A stretch of DNA of 9,090 bases from Octopus sinensis (GCF_006345805.1 NW_021828113.1:1-9090); one strand, 5' to 3'; counted from the stretch's first letter, positions 358-9,090 are shown. A program made the numbers and translations. Notes: generated from the letters alone by a model not told the origin.

Positions 358-1340
358 TCAGTAGCTGATATTTTGCATTGAGACGATTTTCTTTGTGTAG
401 CTTCTCTGAGTTGCTTCGAGTTCTGCTGTTAGTTTTATATTGTGTGGTGACCACAGTTGGGAGCAGTAGTCCAAGCGGATGAGGACGAATGTTTTCCATA
501 GGACCATCAGTGTCTCCTTCTCTCTTGTTCTGAAATTTCGGAGAATCCATCCAGCTAGCCGTCTGCATTTTATCACCAGATTAGCAATATGCACTTGGAA
601 AGATGCATCATTGCTCATGTCAATGCCCAGGTCACGCACTGATTTTGACTCAGAGATTGCAATTCTTCCTGGGCCAGTGTATCGAGTCTTCACGTCGTTT
701 ACATTTGTGTGCCAGTAGTGCAGGGCCTGGAACTTACCTGCATTAAACTGCATGTTGTTGTCCTCAGCCCACCTGTATATTGTGTCCAGCTCCTGTTGCA
801 GATGCACAATATTTTCAGGGTTTTGTATTGCGTGGGAGACTTTTGTGTCATCTGCATAGCTAGCAAGGGTGGTCATCGTAGCAACTGAAGGCATATCTGA
901 AAGGGCCACTATGAACATCAGTGGCCCCAAGACAGTGCCCTGTGGGACACCGCTTGTTATTTGCGTTTCCTTAGAGGTTGCTCCATTGCTCACAACTGCC
1001 GGTTTTCTGTGTTTTAGGAAGTTGTGCAGCCACTCTCCAAGTTTTCCGCCTATGCCGAGACCACGCAGTTTGTGACAGATCATACCATGGTCGACCTTAT
1101 CAAAGGCTTTTGCAAAGTCGAGATATATTACATCCACATTTGAGCCATTAGTAGCTGTTTCAAACACCAGTCATAGTGTTGCAGGAGCTTTGTTAGGCAG
1201 CCTCTACCTGGTCGAAATCCATGCTGGGTGTCAGACAGCAAGTCATTTTCTTCAAGGAACATGATTAGTTTCTTACGGACTATTCGTTCCATGACTTTGC
1301 TGATGTGTGAGGTCAGAGAGATAGGCCTATAATTTTTAGC
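358..1340 (-). pseudogene. ORF2 reverse transcriptase domain of CR1 copy A (frameshifted near 1148 and 1357; TGA at 358-360 where Trp is expected)
   Basis: ORF 358..1167 (269 aa) carries LDFAKAFD, GVPQGTVLGP and YADD (847-858). NYRPISL lies at 1314-1334 in the adjacent frame. Confidence 0.93.
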
Positions 1341-2201
1341 ATCTGCTCTGCTACCTCCTTATGGATAGGGCATATTACCCCCTCTTTCAATTTGACTGGG
1401 AGCTTACCACTTGCAAGAAAGCTCTGAAAAAGAAAGCTGTAGCGGTTTTGCAAGGGCTTGTTTGCACGATTTGAGAAGGATCGCTGGAATCCATCAGGTC
1501 CAGCAGCTGAGTTGTGTCAATCTCATCAATGGCTAGTGTGATATCATCATCTTCGATGTTGATGTACTCAATTTTTGTCTCTTTGGCCGCAGGTAAAGTG
1601 GCAAAGAATTCTTCTGGGTTGTTTACTTGCCTGTGTCCTAGAGGTGTAGTGAACACACTTTGGAACTGTTCGTTCAGTATTTCACTTATCCTCGTGGGAT
1701 TTCCTGTGAGAGAGCCATCTTTTGGAAGAGAGGTCCTATTCTCTGGTGCACTGGCTGTCTCTTTGGCAAACTTAAAGAAAGCTTTAGGGTTTGATTTTCT
1801 ATTTTCTATTACCCAAGCTTCTTTATCTGCTCTCTCCTTTTCATGGGACTGATGTAGACTTTTCTCAGTTTCCATTAGCATTCTTTCGAGCCGAGACTTC
1901 TCATCACTTTTAGTGTGCTTGCTCAGGCGGTTCACAATCCTTGTCCGTCGTCTCATAAGAATCCTCCTTTCTCTAGGGATCCTGTTTTTGTTCTTGTGTG
2001 TGCTGGCCCTGCACATTGGGACATATTTGTCACATATGGCTTGTATTATGGACATGAAGTGTTTGTGTTTCATGTTTATGTCCGGTGTGGAGAGACATTC
2101 AGGCCAATCCTGTTTGAGGATCTCTTCCTCAATCAACTTCCAGTTGGCTTTATGAAAGTTTAAGTTGGAGAGATGGTGGATGCTTCGTATAGGCTGTGTG
2201 T
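1341..2201 (-). pseudogene. ORF2 endonuclease-RT linker region of CR1 copy A (several frameshifts)
   Basis: ORF 1387..2136 plus adjacent frames give LSNLNFHKANWKLIEEEI, NPKAFFKFAK, ISEILNEQFQSVFT and SAAGPDGF...LLKSCK...LAKPL, typical of LINE ORF2 linkers. Confidence 0.85.
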
Positions 2202-2476: not shown

Positions 2477-2477
2477 A

Positions 2478-2485
2478 TATATGTA

Positions 2486-2550
<65 letters not shown>

Positions 2551-2652
2551 TATGTATATATATATATATGTCTATATATATATATGTCTATATATATATA
2601 TATGTATATATATATATCTATGTAATATACATATGTATATATATATATATGT

Positions 2653-2702
<50 letters not shown>

Positions 2703-2955
2703 GATTATATGTATATATATATATATGTATATATATATATGTATATATATATAATGTATATATATATATAGTATATATAGCGATATATATATATATGTAT
2801 ATATATATTGTATGTATATATATATGTATGTATATATATATGTATGTATATATAGGTGTATATTATAATATGTATATATCTATATGTGTAATATATATAT
2901 GTATATATATATATATGTATTATTATATATATGTATATATAATATGTTATATATA

Positions 2956-2997
<42 letters not shown>

Positions 2998-2999
2998 CG

Positions 3000-3051
<52 letters not shown>

Positions 3052-3089
3052 TTGTAATATATATATATATATATATGTATACTATAATC

Positions 3090-3145
<56 letters not shown>

Positions 3146-3160
3146 ATATATATATATATA
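2478..3160. repeat. Degenerate (TA)n microsatellite, about 680 bp, interrupted mainly by G (TATG-type units)
   Basis: Directly visible. It is the source of the spurious YI-repeat ORFs. Confidence 0.99.
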
Positions 3161-3257: not shown

Positions 3258-3269
3258 TTATATATATAA

Positions 3270-3323
<54 letters not shown>

Positions 3324-3376
3324 TAATATATGTATATATGAATATATATATATATGTCAGTATTATATATATATAT
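3258..3376. repeat. Degenerate (TA)n microsatellite, about 120 bp
   Basis: Directly visible. Confidence 0.97.
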
Positions 3377-3714: not shown

Positions 3715-3845
3715 TATATATATATGTATATATATAATATGTATATATATATATATATATATATATTAGTATAATAGATATATATATATTGTATATAGAT
3801 ATATATATATGTATATATATATATGTTATATATATTATATATATG

Positions 3846-3882
<37 letters not shown>

Positions 3883-3898
3883 TATGTATATATTATAT

Positions 3899-3978
<80 letters not shown>

Positions 3979-4072
3979 TTATATATATATATATAATATA
4001 TATATATATATGTATATAATATTATAGATATATATATTATGTATATATCTATATATATATGTATATTATATA

Positions 4073-4137
<65 letters not shown>

Positions 4138-4182
4138 TATATATATATATATATGTTATATGTTATATATATATGTATATAT
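3715..4182. repeat. Degenerate (TA)n microsatellite, about 470 bp
   Basis: Directly visible. Confidence 0.99.
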
Positions 4183-5380
4183 ACTCAGCTCCTACAACAC
4201 TAGACTGGGTGCTGAAACGGCTGCTAACCACTCAAATGTGGAAGTGATATATCTCGACTTTGCAAAGGCCTTTGATAAAGTCGATCATGGAATGATATGT
4301 CACAAACTGCGTGATCTCAACATAGTTGGAAAACTGGGAGAATGGCTTCATGACTTTCTGAAAGATAGAAGTCAGGTGGTAGTAGCCCAATTAAACGCAA
4401 ATAGTGAGCGGTGTTCCGCAGGGCACTGTTCTGGGACCACTACTGTTCATAATGGCCCTCTCAGACATGCCCTCAGCCACGCAGAGAGCCACGATCACAA
4501 GTTATGCAGATGATACAAAAGTTTCACGGGCAATACAGAACCCTGAGGACACTAAACACCTGCAATGTGAGCTGGACAAAATACACAAGTGGGCTGAAAA
4601 GAATAGCATGCAGTTCAATGCTGAAAAGTTTCAAGCTCTATACTATCAGCATGCAAAACTAAATGCAATACTCAATGAATACACTGGACCCGGAGGAATA
4701 GCAATCCCAGAGGCACAATCAGTGCGTGACCTAGGTATTTACATGAGTGATGATGCGACCTTTCGTGTACATGTTGCTAAATTGGCAATGAAACGTAGAC
4801 GACGGCCGGATGGATCCTCAGAACCTTTAGAACAAGAGAACAAGAAACCATGATGGTCCTCTGGAGGACACTTGTCCTAAGCCACTTTGACTACTGCTCT
4901 CAGTTATGGTCACCATCCAGTGTCAAGTTAATCACAGAGCTCGAGGCGATCCAACGTAGCTACACGAAGAGGATAGCCTCTATGCAGAATGTAAGCTATG
5001 GGAAAGACTCAAGAGATTAAAAACTATATTCCCTGGAGCGTAGGCGGGGGAAAGATATGCCATAACTACATCTGGAAGATCCTGAGGGACGTGTCCTAAA
5101 CTTTGCATCGAGAGTTACGCAAATGCCAGAACTGGGCGCCACTGCGTGGGCCTAGGACTCCAAACTTGCCATCAAGATGTAGGACAAGATTCTGTGATAG
5201 CCTGGGCTTCGAGGCCCACAGCTCTTCAATCCTCCCGAAGAACTGAGAGACCTGCATGGGGTGGATGCAGATGTCGTTAAAATGAAGCTGGATCTCTTCC
5301 TGTCAGGTGTCCCAGATGAACCAACTTCACGGCAGGAGGGGCAGATGAGGGCAGCTGCATCGAACTCTCTCATGCACTAA
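4183..5380 (+). pseudogene. Partial ORF2 (RT and C-terminal domain) of CR1 copy B; multiple frameshifts and a ~13-15 bp deletion near 4385
   Basis: ORF fragments 4076..4513 and 4404..4853 contain RT motifs in successive frames. Alignment to copy A shows the small deletion. Confidence 0.9.
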
Positions 5381-5472: not shown

Positions 5473-5481
5473 AAACTAGAA

Positions 5482-5543
5482 TATATATATATATGTATAT
5501 ATGTATATATATGTGTTATATGTATATATATGTATATATGTAT

Positions 5544-5583
<40 letters not shown>

Positions 5584-5750
5584 TATAGATATATATAGAT
5601 ATATATATATATATGTATATATGTAGATTATATATAATATATGTATATATGTAGGATATATATATAATATAGATATATATGTATATATGTATATATATAT
5701 ATAATATATATATATAATAGATATGTATATATGTATATAGTATATATATA

Positions 5751-5828
<78 letters not shown>

Positions 5829-5880
5829 ATATATATGTATATATATATATATATATAAATGTATATATGTATATATATAT
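5482..5880. repeat. Degenerate (TA)n microsatellite, about 400 bp, between the 3' ends of CR1 copy B and the RTE element
   Basis: Directly visible. Confidence 0.99.
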
Positions 5881-5881
5881 C

Positions 5882-5907
5882 TCATCATCATCATCATCAT
5901 CATCATC
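5882..5907 (-). repeat. (GAT)8 trinucleotide 3' tail of the RTE element ((TCA)8 on the + strand)
   Basis: Eight perfect units immediately after the RTE 3' UTR. RTE-clade elements typically end in short tandem repeats rather than poly(A). Confidence 0.9.
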
Positions 5908-6055
5908 GTTAAATGTCCGTTTTTCCCGCGCTAGCACGGTTGGACGGTTCGACCGGGGTCTGGGAAGCCAGGGGCCGCTCCAGGCTCCAGTCTGATTTGG
6001 CAGAGTTTTAGGCTGGATGCCCTTCCTAACGCCAACCTCTGTGAGAGGATTGGGT

Positions 6056-6130
6056 GCTTTTTACGTGCCACCTGCACAGGGCCGGGGAGTCCGGCATTGG
6101 TCGCGATCGGTTCGAGCTTTTAACGTGCCA
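6056..6130. repeat. 15-bp imperfect direct repeat, period 60 (GCTTTTTACGTGCCA / GCTTTTAACGTGCCA)
   Basis: Copies at 6056-6070 and 6116-6130, one mismatch. Confidence 0.9.
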
Positions 6131-6152
6131 GCGGAACGGGCGGGCAACTGGG

Positions 6153-6184
6153 TCCGGGGTACTTTGGGGATCCGGGGTACTTTG
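6153..6184. repeat. 14-bp perfect direct repeat, period 18 (TCCGGGGTACTTTG)
   Basis: Copies at 6153-6166 and 6171-6184. Confidence 0.95.
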
Positions 6185-6864
6185 AATGGGTAGGGGGTAT
6201 GTGGAATTGCTGCAGAAAGCAGCCCGGGTCTTTGCAGTCACAGCATATCTCCAGAGATCTCGGTCTTTCGCCATTGCTCAGTGAGGCCCAATGCTCTGAG
6301 GTCATGCTTGACTACCTCATCCCATGTCTTCCTGGGTCTACCTCTCCCCTGATACCTTCAACTGTTTGGGAGTGGCACTTCTTCACACATCTCTCTTCAT
6401 CCATCCGCAGCACATGACCATACCATCGCAAGCGTCGCTCTTGCACACCACATCTGATGCTTCTTATATCCAGCATTTCTCTTAGGATGCTTACACTCTG
6501 TCTTGCGTGCACACTGACACTACACATCCAGCGGATCATGCTAGCTTCATTTCTTTCAAGTCTACGCATGTCCTCTGCAGTCACTGCCCATGTTTCATTA
6601 CCGTGAAGCATGGCAGTTCGCACACATGCATCATACAATCTACCTTTCGCTCTGAGGGAGAGAGAGACCTTTTTGCCAGTAGGGTAGGAGCTTTCTGAAC
6701 TTTGCCCAGGCTATTCGTATTCTAGTGGTGATACTCTCTGTGCATCCACCTCCGCTACTAACTTGGTCACCCAGGTAGCGGAAACTATCAACTACTTCTA
6801 GTTTCTCTCCCTGGAGTGTGATGGAATCTGTTTTCTGAGTGTCTGTTGTGTCTATTGTCCCTGT

Positions 6865-7002
6865 GCATCTGCCGCACATGAAAGCTATCTTATCTGTTAA
6901 TTTCCCTTTAATGTTGCTGACCATCTTATGTGTCCATAACTTACAATGGGTGCATCTTATGGAGTTTCTACATGTACCTTTCCTACAGATTGAGCAGGGC
7001 CA
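6865..7002 (-). other. PHD-type zinc finger (C4HC3 pattern, 7 of 8 ligands present) inserted within the RTE RT domain
   Basis: Single frame: WPCSICRKGTCRNSIRCTHCKLWTHKMVSNIKGKLTDKIAFMCGRC = C-x2-C-x10-C-x2-C-x4-H-x2-(V, Cys expected)-x14-C-x2-C. Confidence 0.78.
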
Positions 7003-8499
7003 CCTACCCGAGGGGGTGTGTGCTGAGTACCTCTTGCTGCTTACTAATACTTTGGTTTTGCTACATTTATTCTAAGGTCCTTTGATTCCAACCCTTGCTT
7101 CCACACCCGAAATTTCTCTTCTAGTTCCAGTAGTGATTCTGCTATGAGAGCTAGGTCATCGGCACATAGAGGAGCTCCCAGGGGCATCCCGTTTTGAATC
7201 CTCTGTTATTGCCTTAAGGACTATGATGAATAAAAGGGGACTGAGGGCTGAGACCCTGGTGCCCACCTACTTCTACCCGGAATTCTTCACTATATCGTTG
7301 CCAATCCTAACCTTGCTGACAGCCTCCTCTGTATAGAGCCTGTACAGCCCTTATTAGCCATTCTTCAATCTCCAGTTTCGCATCGACCACCAGATGAGGG
7401 AACGGGGAACCCAGTCAAGGCTTTCTCCAAGTCTACAAAAGCTATGTAGAGGGGTTTATCTTTAGCTAGGTACTTCTCCTGCAGTTGTCGGACCAGGAAT
7501 ATAGCATCAGTGGTGCTTCTACCTGGTACAAAACCGAACTGCATTTCATCTAAACAAATTCTCTCCCTAATGAGATGGGTTATGACCTTCTCTGAGACCT
7601 TCATAACTGGTCCAACAGTTGATACCTCTGTAGTTATTTCTATCTAGAGCATCACCCTTACCCTTGTAGCAGTTGACTATGGTGCTGCTGCACCAGTCAT
7701 TGGGTATGACTCCATGTGAACTACATGGTTTACAATGCGGGTGACTATGGTATAGCCCACATAGCCAGCTGTTTTAAGCATCTCAGCAGTGATTCCTGAT
7801 AGGCCAGGGGCTTTGCCTGGTTCATATCCTTAATTGCCTTATCTACAAGGGAGCTGTCTATTCGGTAGCTGGTCCCTCTATGGGTCAACATTTGGCAGCT
7901 CTCCTCCTCCCATTCATTTCCTCATTCAGCAGTCTTTCATAATGGCTTCTCCAAGCCTCTTTCTTTTCACTAGCAGTAAAAGCAAGTGCCCCATCATCCA
8001 TGCGGACACATTTCTCTCCTATAACATCACTATTTTCTCTGACACACTGTCTGGCAATCGAAATACTTCAGCTCTTTGATCTCACGTCGCTGGACATTGG
8101 CAAACTTCTTCTTTTCTGCTACGTCTTTGGCTATGTATACCTGCCGCCCAGCCTCCCTTTTGGCTATCTGGTACAGTTCCCTGCTGCCCCCATCCTTCCA
8201 GGCTTTCCAGGCCCGTCTCTTTTTACAGATGGCTTTATCTACTGCACTTATTCCACCACCACGTAATTTAGGTCTGGAAGGGACTTTGCACACATCCACA
8301 GACTCGGTCTGTGGCACTCAGCAAGCTGTCCCGTAGGAATTCCCAGCTACCTTCTATGTCTGACGTCTGAAGCTCCTCCTCCCTCTCATCAAATTTCTTG
8401 ATGAGTGTCCCTAAATTTCTGACCATGTGAAGGGTTCTTAGCCTCCAAATCCTTCTTTTCTGGATTGGTTGTTTCTTGGAGTCCTTCTGGCCTCAAGCT

Positions 8500-9090
8500 T
8501 AAAGTCACTGATGATTAGTCTATGCTGAGGGATACATTCTTCACCCGGGAGGGTCTTTGTATTCAAGAGCAACCCTGCATCCCGCTGTCTGGTGAGGATG
8601 AAGTCTATTTGGCTAGCGGAGTCTCCTGATGAAGTTATAAGGTGGCAGACTGGCTTCTTGAAGTTAGTGTTGCAGATTGAAAGGTTACATGCATCACAGA
8701 ATTCCAGCAGTCTAGTTCCCTCATCATTTCTGGTGCCAATACCATAGCACCATGTACCCCAGTGAAGATACCCGATTCCCGCCCAACATACCCATTAAAA
8801 TCTCCACCTACAAAGATGAGGTCCTTGCTACTAGTCTTTGAAGTAGCCTGCAGAAGGCTATCATAAAAGTTGTACTTCTGATCATTTGGTAGTCCCGCTT
8901 TGTGGGGCATAGGCGGAGATAATCATAGCTGTGCCACTCTGTAGGACCAAACCTGAGCTTAAGCACTCTATCGCAAACCCTGACAACCTCTATGACCTCA
9001 TCCACCATTTCTCCACAAGGAGAATGCCTACACCCCTACACCTTCCACGGTACCTTGCCAGAAGGTTGTACCTAAGGCCTTGCCGTGAGG
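8500..9090 (-). pseudogene. AP-like endonuclease (EEP fold) domain of the RTE element
   Basis: GVGILL, SAYAPQ, GDFN, TRNDEGTRLLEFC, NTNFKK, QIDFIL and QHRL motifs in successive frames. Confidence 0.9.

Follow-up and report, generated by a model that had tools for sequence, protein, structure and literature searches.

What is a cysteine- and histidine-rich segment doing inside the polymerase of a retrotransposon? The question is raised by a 9,090-nucleotide stretch of Octopus sinensis DNA (GCF_006345805.1 NW_021828113.1:1-9090; the whole stretch is called the window here, and all coordinates are counted from its first letter), which carries on its minus strand a decayed copy of an RTE-type long interspersed nuclear element (LINE) with such a segment at 7002..6865(-), within the reverse transcriptase (RT). 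RTE elements are among the most widespread LINEs of animals and the parents of many short interspersed nuclear elements (SINEs), and to our knowledge their choice of target is poorly understood. The first-pass annotation, made from this DNA alone, had described the segment as a PHD zinc finger inserted in frame and had suggested that it reads histone H3 tails. Our analysis indicated that the insert is no accident of one copy and belongs, as a fixed feature under selection, to a very large metazoan lineage of RTE elements, and that its likely role has to be weighed among several candidates.

The finger is contained in an open frame of 143 codons at 7071..6643(-), the minus-strand translation of which reads NKCSKTKVLVSSKRYSAHTPSGRWPCSICRKGTCRNSIRCTHCKLWTHKMVSNIKGKLTDKIAFMCGRCTGTIDTTDTQKTDSITLQGEKLEVVDSFRYLGDQ / SKTKVLVSSKRYSAHTPSGRWPCSICRKGTCRNSIRCTHCKLWTHKMVSNIKGKLTDKIAFMCGRCTGTIDTTDTQKTDSITLQGEKLEVVDSFRYLGDQVSSGGGC. 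In this frame 91 codons separate RT motif 6 (KTK) from RT motif 7 (YLG) without interruption, as had been proposed; the position given for YLG (6777..6769) was exact, while KTK, noted at 7052-7060, was one base off and lies at 7059..7051(-). The comparison drawn with CR1 was also correct, the interval from K to RDLG in the CR1-like open reading frame (ORF) at 358..1167(-) being 32 residues long. The finger itself, WPC...CGRC (WPCSIC…CTHC…WTH-KMV…CGRC), occupies exactly 7002..6865(-) and reads WPCSICRKGTCRNSIRCTHCKLWTHKMVSNIKGKLTDKIAFMCGRC, with the ligand spacing C-x2-C-x10-C-x2-C-x4-H-x2-V-x14-C-x2-C. Translation thus bore out a C4HC3 spacing with seven of the eight ligands, the sixth being replaced by Val (GTC, 6921..6919). 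The six-frame translation of the window contains the ligand pattern a single time, and 0.003 occurrences are expected per shuffled window.

The window copy alone reached 16 bits against the Pfam PHD profile (E=0.013), below the cut-off of 24, so that the case for a PHD finger rests on its intact relatives. These scored 28.3, 28.6, 26.7, 29.2, 24.7, 28.7 and 27.2 bits against PF00628 (gathering cut-off 24), with the match covering profile positions 1-47 of 47, and some divergent members fell under the cut-off at 17-22.7 bits. The hidden Markov model check that the first-pass annotation had put forward was therefore passed by the intact relatives (24.7-29.2 bits) and failed by the window copy. 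Assignments to C1, RING and PHD_2 each remained under their own thresholds and scored below PHD. The closest fingers among the matches listed were octopus copies (O. vulgaris, O. bimaculoides), which stood in for a consensus of the window's own subfamily. Since these read …CKLWTHKRCSN… and …KGVGRNSI…, the KMVS and KGTC of the window are decay of KRCS and KGVG, and the sixth Cys, the return of which in a family consensus had been proposed as a test, is restored as HKRCS. The finger of the window copy is hence inactivated (Cys6 to Val, GVG to GTC), like the rest of the element. At 6958-6978(-) the change of the near-invariant G-V-G to G-T-C creates a spurious extra Cys, which could mislead ligand counting.

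Structure prediction pointed to the same fold. An AlphaFold2 model of a 564-residue RT built on a 60-sequence alignment had a mean predicted local distance difference test score (pLDDT) of 84.8 and a predicted template-modelling score of 0.80, with the finger and its linkers at 91-95, and a model of the isolated finger (pLDDT 78.7) placed strands at N-S-I and W-V-H. When the isolated finger was searched with Foldseek, all 50 of the top 50 PDB matches were PHD fingers, among them BAZ2B, ING1/4/5, BPTF, Pygo, TRIM24/33, AIRE and BHC80, with template-modelling scores of up to 0.68 and root-mean-square deviations of 2.2-3 Å; the E-values were weak (0.017 or higher), as is to be expected of so small a domain. 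The whole RT model matched the structures of R2 and LINE-1 ORF2p at E~1e-15, and no RTE protein with a solved structure was among the PDB matches of the RT sequence and model searches. The finger is accordingly predicted to be a PHD-type C4HC3 cross-brace fold of about 47 residues, or about 60 with two variable linkers, and would be a two-zinc module.

Conservation of the insert and its place among RTE elements

Two protein searches were made, one with the repaired RT segment as query (214 matches, most of them with precomputed RVT_1 and PHD assignments) and one with a full-length ORF (120 matches listed), and the sequences were studied in alignments of 21 and 60 members and in a non-redundant set of 32 filtered to less than 70% identity. 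The insert was present in every sequence covering the region in the 21- and 60-sequence alignments, and in every relative spanning it among the 240 matches listed, so that it is not private to the octopus copy. All eight ligands were found in 101 of the 120 matches listed from the first search, the other 19 being truncated or decayed with a visible remnant, and between YADD and YLG in 112 of the 120 listed from the second, the other eight being truncated or decayed and one of these being without the RT region. In full-length ORFs (1,000-1,140 residues) the finger was present in 88 of 88, at a median start residue of 794 of 1,062. Two of the 88 had another Cys/His motif, at a non-conserved place upstream of the finger, and none of the 88 had a C-terminal one; the finger is the sole conserved zinc module in the ORF of about 1,060 residues. 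A typical layout is that of the 1,079-residue relative P0155, where a single ORF encodes the endonuclease (APE, 52-273, Pfam Exo_endo_phos), RVT_1 (589-793), PHD (809-852) and then the remaining RT.

The consensus of the finger reads SG-x-[W/Y/F]-P-C-x-V-C-x-x-G-V-G-x-N-S-I-x-C-x-x-C-x-x-W-V-H-K-K-C-S-G-I-x-G-R-L-x5-[F/Y]-x-C-x-R-C. The eight ligand columns and the Pro before Cys1 are invariant in the 32 non-redundant sequences, and in the full 60-sequence alignment seven of the eight ligands are invariant and Cys8 is at least 90% conserved. Over the 32 sequences, the top residue of a column had a mean frequency of 0.64 in the finger, or 0.56 once the ligands are set aside, as compared with 0.59 in the thumb, 0.73 in RT motifs 1-6 and 0.34-0.40 in the two linkers. 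The first linker (VLVSSKRYSAHTPSGR, 7050..7003(-)), between motif 6 and the finger, has the higher of these two values and the second (6864..6778(-)), which runs through the strand LEVVDSFR into motif 7, the lower. The ratio of non-synonymous to synonymous substitution (dN/dS, Nei-Gojobori) was calculated for one pair of intact subfamily copies from a lucinid-clam assembly (82% amino-acid identity) and came to 0.155 (finger), 0.149 (thumb), 0.035 (RT core) and 0.084 (overall), values that are approximate because they come from a single pair with dS near saturation (0.75-1.6). On this pair the finger does not evolve neutrally; neutral evolution was the outcome that the first-pass annotation had named as adverse to its proposal.

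Its suggestion that the lineage might be widespread also proved right. A profile running from motif 6 through the finger to motif 7 found 1,773 clusters at 50% identity with E<=1e-10, and 108 with E<=1e-30, among 1.84 billion proteins. The named sources fall into five animal groups, namely cnidarians, bivalves, octopuses, amphioxus and a catfish, and comprise Hydractinia, Mercenaria, Octopus, lucinid clams (the copies of which are present as host DNA in metagenome-assembled genomes (MAGs) of Thiodiazotropha), three Branchiostoma species and the catfish Neoarius. Domain databases already flag the family automatically, with PF00628 precomputed and a UniRef entry named 'Zinc finger PHD-type domain-containing protein'. 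The fold, position, conservation and breadth of lineage of the insert are in this way established by computation.

Several records of this kind stand under unexpected names. Fragments of RTE ORFs with the finger are filed as MAGs of Candidatus Thiodiazotropha, Herbaspirillum and Gammaproteobacteria or under the name Acanthocheilonema viteae, and fragments of the ruminant RTE family BovB as Glaesserella parasuis and Corynebacterium parakroppenstedtii (mis-filed LINE records P0121/P0122, P0447, P0070, P0214, P0531, P0622 and P0322). These animal LINE proteins under bacterial or parasite names look like contamination of assemblies with host DNA. In addition, apparent RTE ORFs are annotated as 'slc22a21 isoform X2' in Neoarius graeffei (P0495) and as 'ribonuclease H' by UniRef in Branchiostoma floridae (P0471); the likely cause is fusion of the RTE ORF with the model of a host gene, or a wrong name given by automatic annotation.

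The assignment of the element to RTE, made in the first-pass annotation, was upheld by the single ORF with endonuclease and RT, the BovB-like C-terminal motifs and the (GAT)n tail. A search with a BovB segment returned real ruminant BovB proteins about 90-95% identical to the query. BovB aligned with the finger family at YADD, at GL+LN..KTK, at the strand IDG.T+E.V.DF.FLG, in the thumb and at the C-terminal motifs (+L.+.GH+MR … GR.R..W … DR.AW), with a clean gap of 63 columns exactly at the linkers and finger, and the end of the second linker of the window copy, from QGEKLEVVDSF onward, aligned with BovB IDGETVETVSDF. By BLASTP, the family and BovB gave two flanking high-scoring segment pairs with E=7e-7 and 4e-11. 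Given that BovB aligns on both flanks and is gapped at the insert, the element belongs to the RTE group and the finger is specific to a lineage within it; the finger is absent from BovB, the sole RTE-type family shown without it.

Possible roles of the finger

The insert lies between motif 6 (KTK) and motif 7 (YLG) in the window and in its relatives alike, and an alignment with L1 ORF2p continues through motif 6 and stops at the start of the finger. By RT motif numbering this is the interval that we take to hold the motif 6a loop of R2. In R2, motif 6a is wedged into a distorted part of the upstream target DNA, between the contacts of the zinc finger and those of the Myb domain, the template RNA is held by regions other than this loop, and the C-terminal zinc knuckle helps to split the target DNA at the nick. 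Since the insert takes the place that motif 6a has in R2, direct contact with nucleic acid is at least as likely as the reading of nucleosomes. The interpretation that we tentatively prefer, at somewhat less than an even chance, is that the finger is a nucleic-acid-contacting zinc module whose ligand would be target DNA or primer and possibly the tail of the template. It would then be a zinc-stabilised, enlarged equivalent of the R2-type motif 6a loop, gripping nucleic acid, most probably target DNA or primer beside the polymerase cleft, in the course of target-primed reverse transcription, contact with target DNA being argued here by analogy with R2. Conserved basic residues would contact phosphates, and two conserved aromatics (the Trp at -2 from the His and the Trp/Tyr/Phe before Pro-Cys1) would stack on bases. 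The finger might thereby supply the zinc-knuckle function that is C-terminal in L1, CR1 and R2 and has no counterpart in RTE proteins.

The idea that had been put forward for this locus was a different one, namely that the finger binds the H3 tail, with methylated K4 or in another state, and tethers the RT and the endonuclease to nucleosomes, and we consider it unlikely on balance. Part of it held up, and these same results weigh against nucleic-acid contact. When a finger-only profile was compared with the PDB, the Pygopus PHD finger came first (E=1e-8), ahead by about one order of magnitude, followed by ALFIN-like 3, PHF23, PHF13, TAF3, BPTF, PHF2, KDM5B, PHF8 and Set3, so that the matches are almost solely PHD fingers that read H3K4me2/3. 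The counterparts of the Pygo1 pocket residues are conserved in the 32 sequences: Y341 corresponds to the aromatic before Pro-Cys1 (Trp in 10, Tyr in 10, Phe in 5 and His in 4, or 29 of 32), V350 to Val (31 of 32), A356 to Ser (29 of 32), I357 to Ile (30 of 32) and the pocket divider W366 to Trp (31 of 32), the latter being the Trp two residues before the His that the first-pass annotation had picked out and that is at least 90% conserved. Four of these kept counterparts of the K4me pocket (Y341, V350, A356 and W366) fit a peptide pocket as well as they fit base stacking. The motifs [W/Y/F]-P-C-G-[V/I]-C and C-x-x-W-x-H-x-x-C-[ST]-G are close to those of Pygo, and the peptide-pairing beta-strand N-S-I is at least 90% conserved. 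To these points must be added that the equivalence between the finger and R2 motif 6a would be a topological one, and that the basic PHD finger of VIN3 binds DNA and RNA only weakly.

What speaks against a histone reader is the chemistry of the surface. The net charge of the finger averaged +6.7 (range +3 to +11) in the 32 sequences, with +9 for the window copy, and every sequence has K or R two residues after the His (position 311 in P0054), whereas canonical histone-binding PHD fingers have acidic binding faces, Pygo1 with a net charge of -6 included. The acidic residues of Pygo are without counterpart: the position of E360, mutation of which cuts H3 binding to background (Pygo1 structure paper), is a variable T/S/R/G/K in the finger, and the D352 lip is lost through a shortening of the loop by two residues. 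The A1 pocket helix of Pygo (G380-E385) is likewise absent. VIN3, moreover, combines a PHD signature with a basic surface and does not bind H3 tails. The chromatin-reader mechanism is thus possible and not the one that we favour, and we regard as distinctly doubtful the specific claim that the finger works as a methyl-lysine or histone-tail (or nucleosome) reader in the polymerase despite its basic charge, perhaps as a Pygopus-like capture from a host. At its N-terminus the finger reads G-x-[W/Y/F]-P-C-G-[V/I]-C (residues 283-290 in P0054, for example) and is near-identical there to the V-Y-P-C-G-I-C of Pygopus, a likeness that could reflect either capture of a Pygo-like host PHD finger or convergence.

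Two further roles were considered, and to each we assign a small probability. In one, the finger would bind the 3' end of the element's own RNA, in its untranslated region (UTR) or repeat tail, and set it in position at the active site of the RT. The end of an RTE copy is a defined short tandem repeat, (GAT)8 in the present case, and recognition of this end would explain the tail specificity common to RTE elements and their SINE partners, the subject, reportedly, of work by Malik and Eickbush in 1998, the title of which speaks of tails shared with SINEs. The finger adjoins motif 7 (the primer grip) and the thumb in the sequence, its basic and aromatic composition is that of zinc knuckles that bind single strands, and the 88 full-length ORFs hold no other RNA-binding zinc module; set against this, the motif 6a loop of R2 touches target DNA and not template RNA. 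In the other, the finger would be a protein-protein or structural module that stabilises the RT fold, multimerises or recruits a host factor, for which there is precedent in the rear face of the Pygo PHD finger, which binds BCL9, and in other PHD fingers with partners other than histones (PMC3241642). The higher pLDDT of the finger in the RT context than in isolation suggests a fixed packing of the finger against the RT. Such a role would leave the invariant basic positions and the aromatics of exposed type unexplained, and the linkers vary in length and sequence, as they typically do where a tethered module acts independently. Finally, from a window copy that is one ligand short and under the Pfam threshold it might have been suspected that the Cys/His pattern is due to chance, or that the insertion, as a captured exon or as an artefact, is confined to this decayed copy. 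This explanation is refuted, and has next to no probability, in view of the rarity of the pattern in shuffled windows, the presence of the insert in every spanning relative from five animal groups and a dN/dS of about 0.15. Direct contact of the finger with nucleic acid stays our preferred, tentative account.

The window element and its surroundings

The RTE-type copy extends over 9034..5884(-), as determined by tblastn and translation of the frames, and comprises a remnant of the APE endonuclease, an RT in which the finger is embedded, a 3' UTR and a tail of (GAT)n, its 5' end being cut by, or close to, the edge of the window. Residues 117-1046 of P0155 matched 9034..6277(-) in tblastn over at least six alternating frames, for which reason the copy is a dead LINE; stops are also present in the frame translations. 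The stretch 9034..5884(-) is therefore a pseudogene of an RTE-type LINE with at least six frame changes. The endonuclease remnant (YAPQSG, IFVGGDFNGYVG) was located at 9034..8495(-) by tblastn with residues 117-297 of P0155. RT motifs 0-5, broken by frameshifts, follow at 7793..7134(-), as shown by translation and tblastn and by a Pfam RVT_1 match on a 79-residue ORF; they include the stretches KGKGDALDRNNYRG (7665..7624), FGFVPGRSTTDA (7538..7503) and AFVDLEKA (7442..7419), and at 7166..7134 the catalytic motif reads CADD in place of the consensus YADD. A one-base frameshift in an A-run lies just upstream of the KTK of motif 6 (INVAK / TKVLV), both Lys residues of which are invariant in three alignments of relatives. 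Beyond the finger, F, Y, L and G are near-invariant in relatives at motif 7 (the primer-grip region), and the RT thumb and RTE-type C-terminal motifs, identified by translation and tblastn and alignable to real BovB, occupy 6768..6239(-), with RLRWYGHVLRMDE at 6434..6396, RGRPRKTW at 6345..6322 and DRDLWRYAV at 6265..6239.

The 3' UTR spans 6238..5884(-) and ends in the short tandem repeat (GAT)8 at 5907..5884 (read as (ATC)8 on the plus strand, 5884..5907) instead of poly(A), where it abuts an (AT)n array. Short direct repeats are present in this UTR at 6056-6183(-): TGGCACGT(T/A)AAAAGC occurs at about 6130..6116 and at 6070..6056, and CCAAAGTACCCCGGA occurs twice at about 6183..6150. These repeats could represent a tail element, structured or duplicated, such as is shared with SINEs.

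The window further contains four imperfect (AT)n arrays (78-83% matches) at 2477-3160, 3259-3376, 3715-4183 and 5481-5880, which together make up about 1.7 kb, or nearly one fifth of it. The last of them adjoins the (GAT)8 with which the RTE copy ends and may represent growth of a microsatellite out of the RTE tail, a phenomenon that, as far as the reference list of PMC9115989 indicates, is the topic of the paper cited there as reference 41. Two related CR1-like LINE RT fragments are present in opposite orientation at 358-2136(-) and 4076-5020(+); both read V(D/E)VIYLDFAKAFDKVDHGMICHKLR, are about 80% identical as proteins and flank the big AT-dinucleotide arrays, the plus-strand copy beginning inside the last array.

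Comparison with known systems

Full-text literature searches, the scope of which left out Repbase reports and subscription journals, found no published description of a PHD finger inside an RTE RT. In the hits inspected by text or by a telling title, the two terms came together through the PHD of CR1 ORF1, reference lists, 'PhD' in acknowledgements or another sense of the abbreviation RTE. The sections of PMC9115989 devoted to RTE-2_OV, an octopus element expressed in the brain, attribute to it a 'C2H2 zinc finger' said to be 'relatively rare in RTE', and they put the endonuclease C-terminal and the zinc finger N-terminal, a domain order that, from those sections, looks reversed. The 'C2H2 zinc finger' of these sections could be the PHD module under a wrong label, or something else.

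If the above is correct, a very large RTE lineage has replaced the motif 6a loop with a conserved PHD module that is predicted to bind two zinc ions. Such a finger offers a concrete and mutable handle on how RTE elements engage DNA, RNA or chromatin. It also exemplifies a 'reader' fold moved into a polymerase, and engineering might draw on it for compact RTs targeted to nucleic acid or chromatin. For annotation it means that a 'PHD-type zinc finger' or 'RT' protein of this kind in a gene model or a bacterial MAG record is usually a fragment of a LINE or contamination from a host.

PHD domains of LINEs were held in the first-pass annotation to be best known from ORF1 of CR1-like elements, and the literature agrees. 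Kapitonov and Jurka are said to have described PHD (and esterase) domains there in 2003. The CR1-like PHD (Metcalfe & Casane 2014, PMC4120745), compared here by description, is likewise a PHD-type finger encoded by a non-LTR (long terminal repeat) retrotransposon, but it belongs to a separate ORF1 protein in the Jockey/CR1 superfamily, whereas the RTE finger lies inside the RT of a single ORF. BovB and classical RTE elements resemble the present family in their single ORF with APE and RT and in their 3' tail of short repeats, and BovB differs by the 63-column gap at the finger, with an identity to the family of 25-28% over the shared part.

In R2 and LINE-1, motif 6a consists of a short, metal-free loop or hairpin of protein, in contrast to an autonomous PHD fold of about 47 residues between two flexible linkers, as predicted for the RTE finger. 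The C-terminal CCHC zinc knuckle of R2, L1 ORF2p and CR1 is an accessory nucleic-acid module on a retroelement enzyme, as the finger may be, yet it has another fold and another position, and the full-length ORFs of the RTE lineage analysed here are without a C-terminal Cys/His motif. Among proteins outside retroelements, Pygopus and the other PHD fingers that read H3K4me2/3 (ALFIN-like, PHF23, PHF13, TAF3, BPTF and ING) share the C4HC3 cross-brace fold, and the Y-P-C-G-I/V-C start, V350, A356/I357 and the Trp divider of Pygopus all have conserved counterparts in the finger; the finger differs in being basic rather than acidic, in lacking the D352 lip, E360 and the A1 helix, and in residing inside a polymerase and not in a chromatin protein. 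The VIN3/VEL superdomain has a PHD signature with a conserved positive surface charge, like the basic finger, but VIN3 is a plant chromatin protein in which the PHD is part of a tripartite superdomain and has lost the pocket architecture, whereas the finger keeps the Trp and the aromatic pocket residues. Chromodomains of chromoviral integrases are accessory chromatin modules at the integrase C-terminus of LTR elements. Were the finger a chromatin reader after all, a metazoan LINE lineage reaching from cnidarians to fish would pick its insertion sites by chromatin state via the RT, and would constitute a non-LTR counterpart of these chromodomain-guided integrases.

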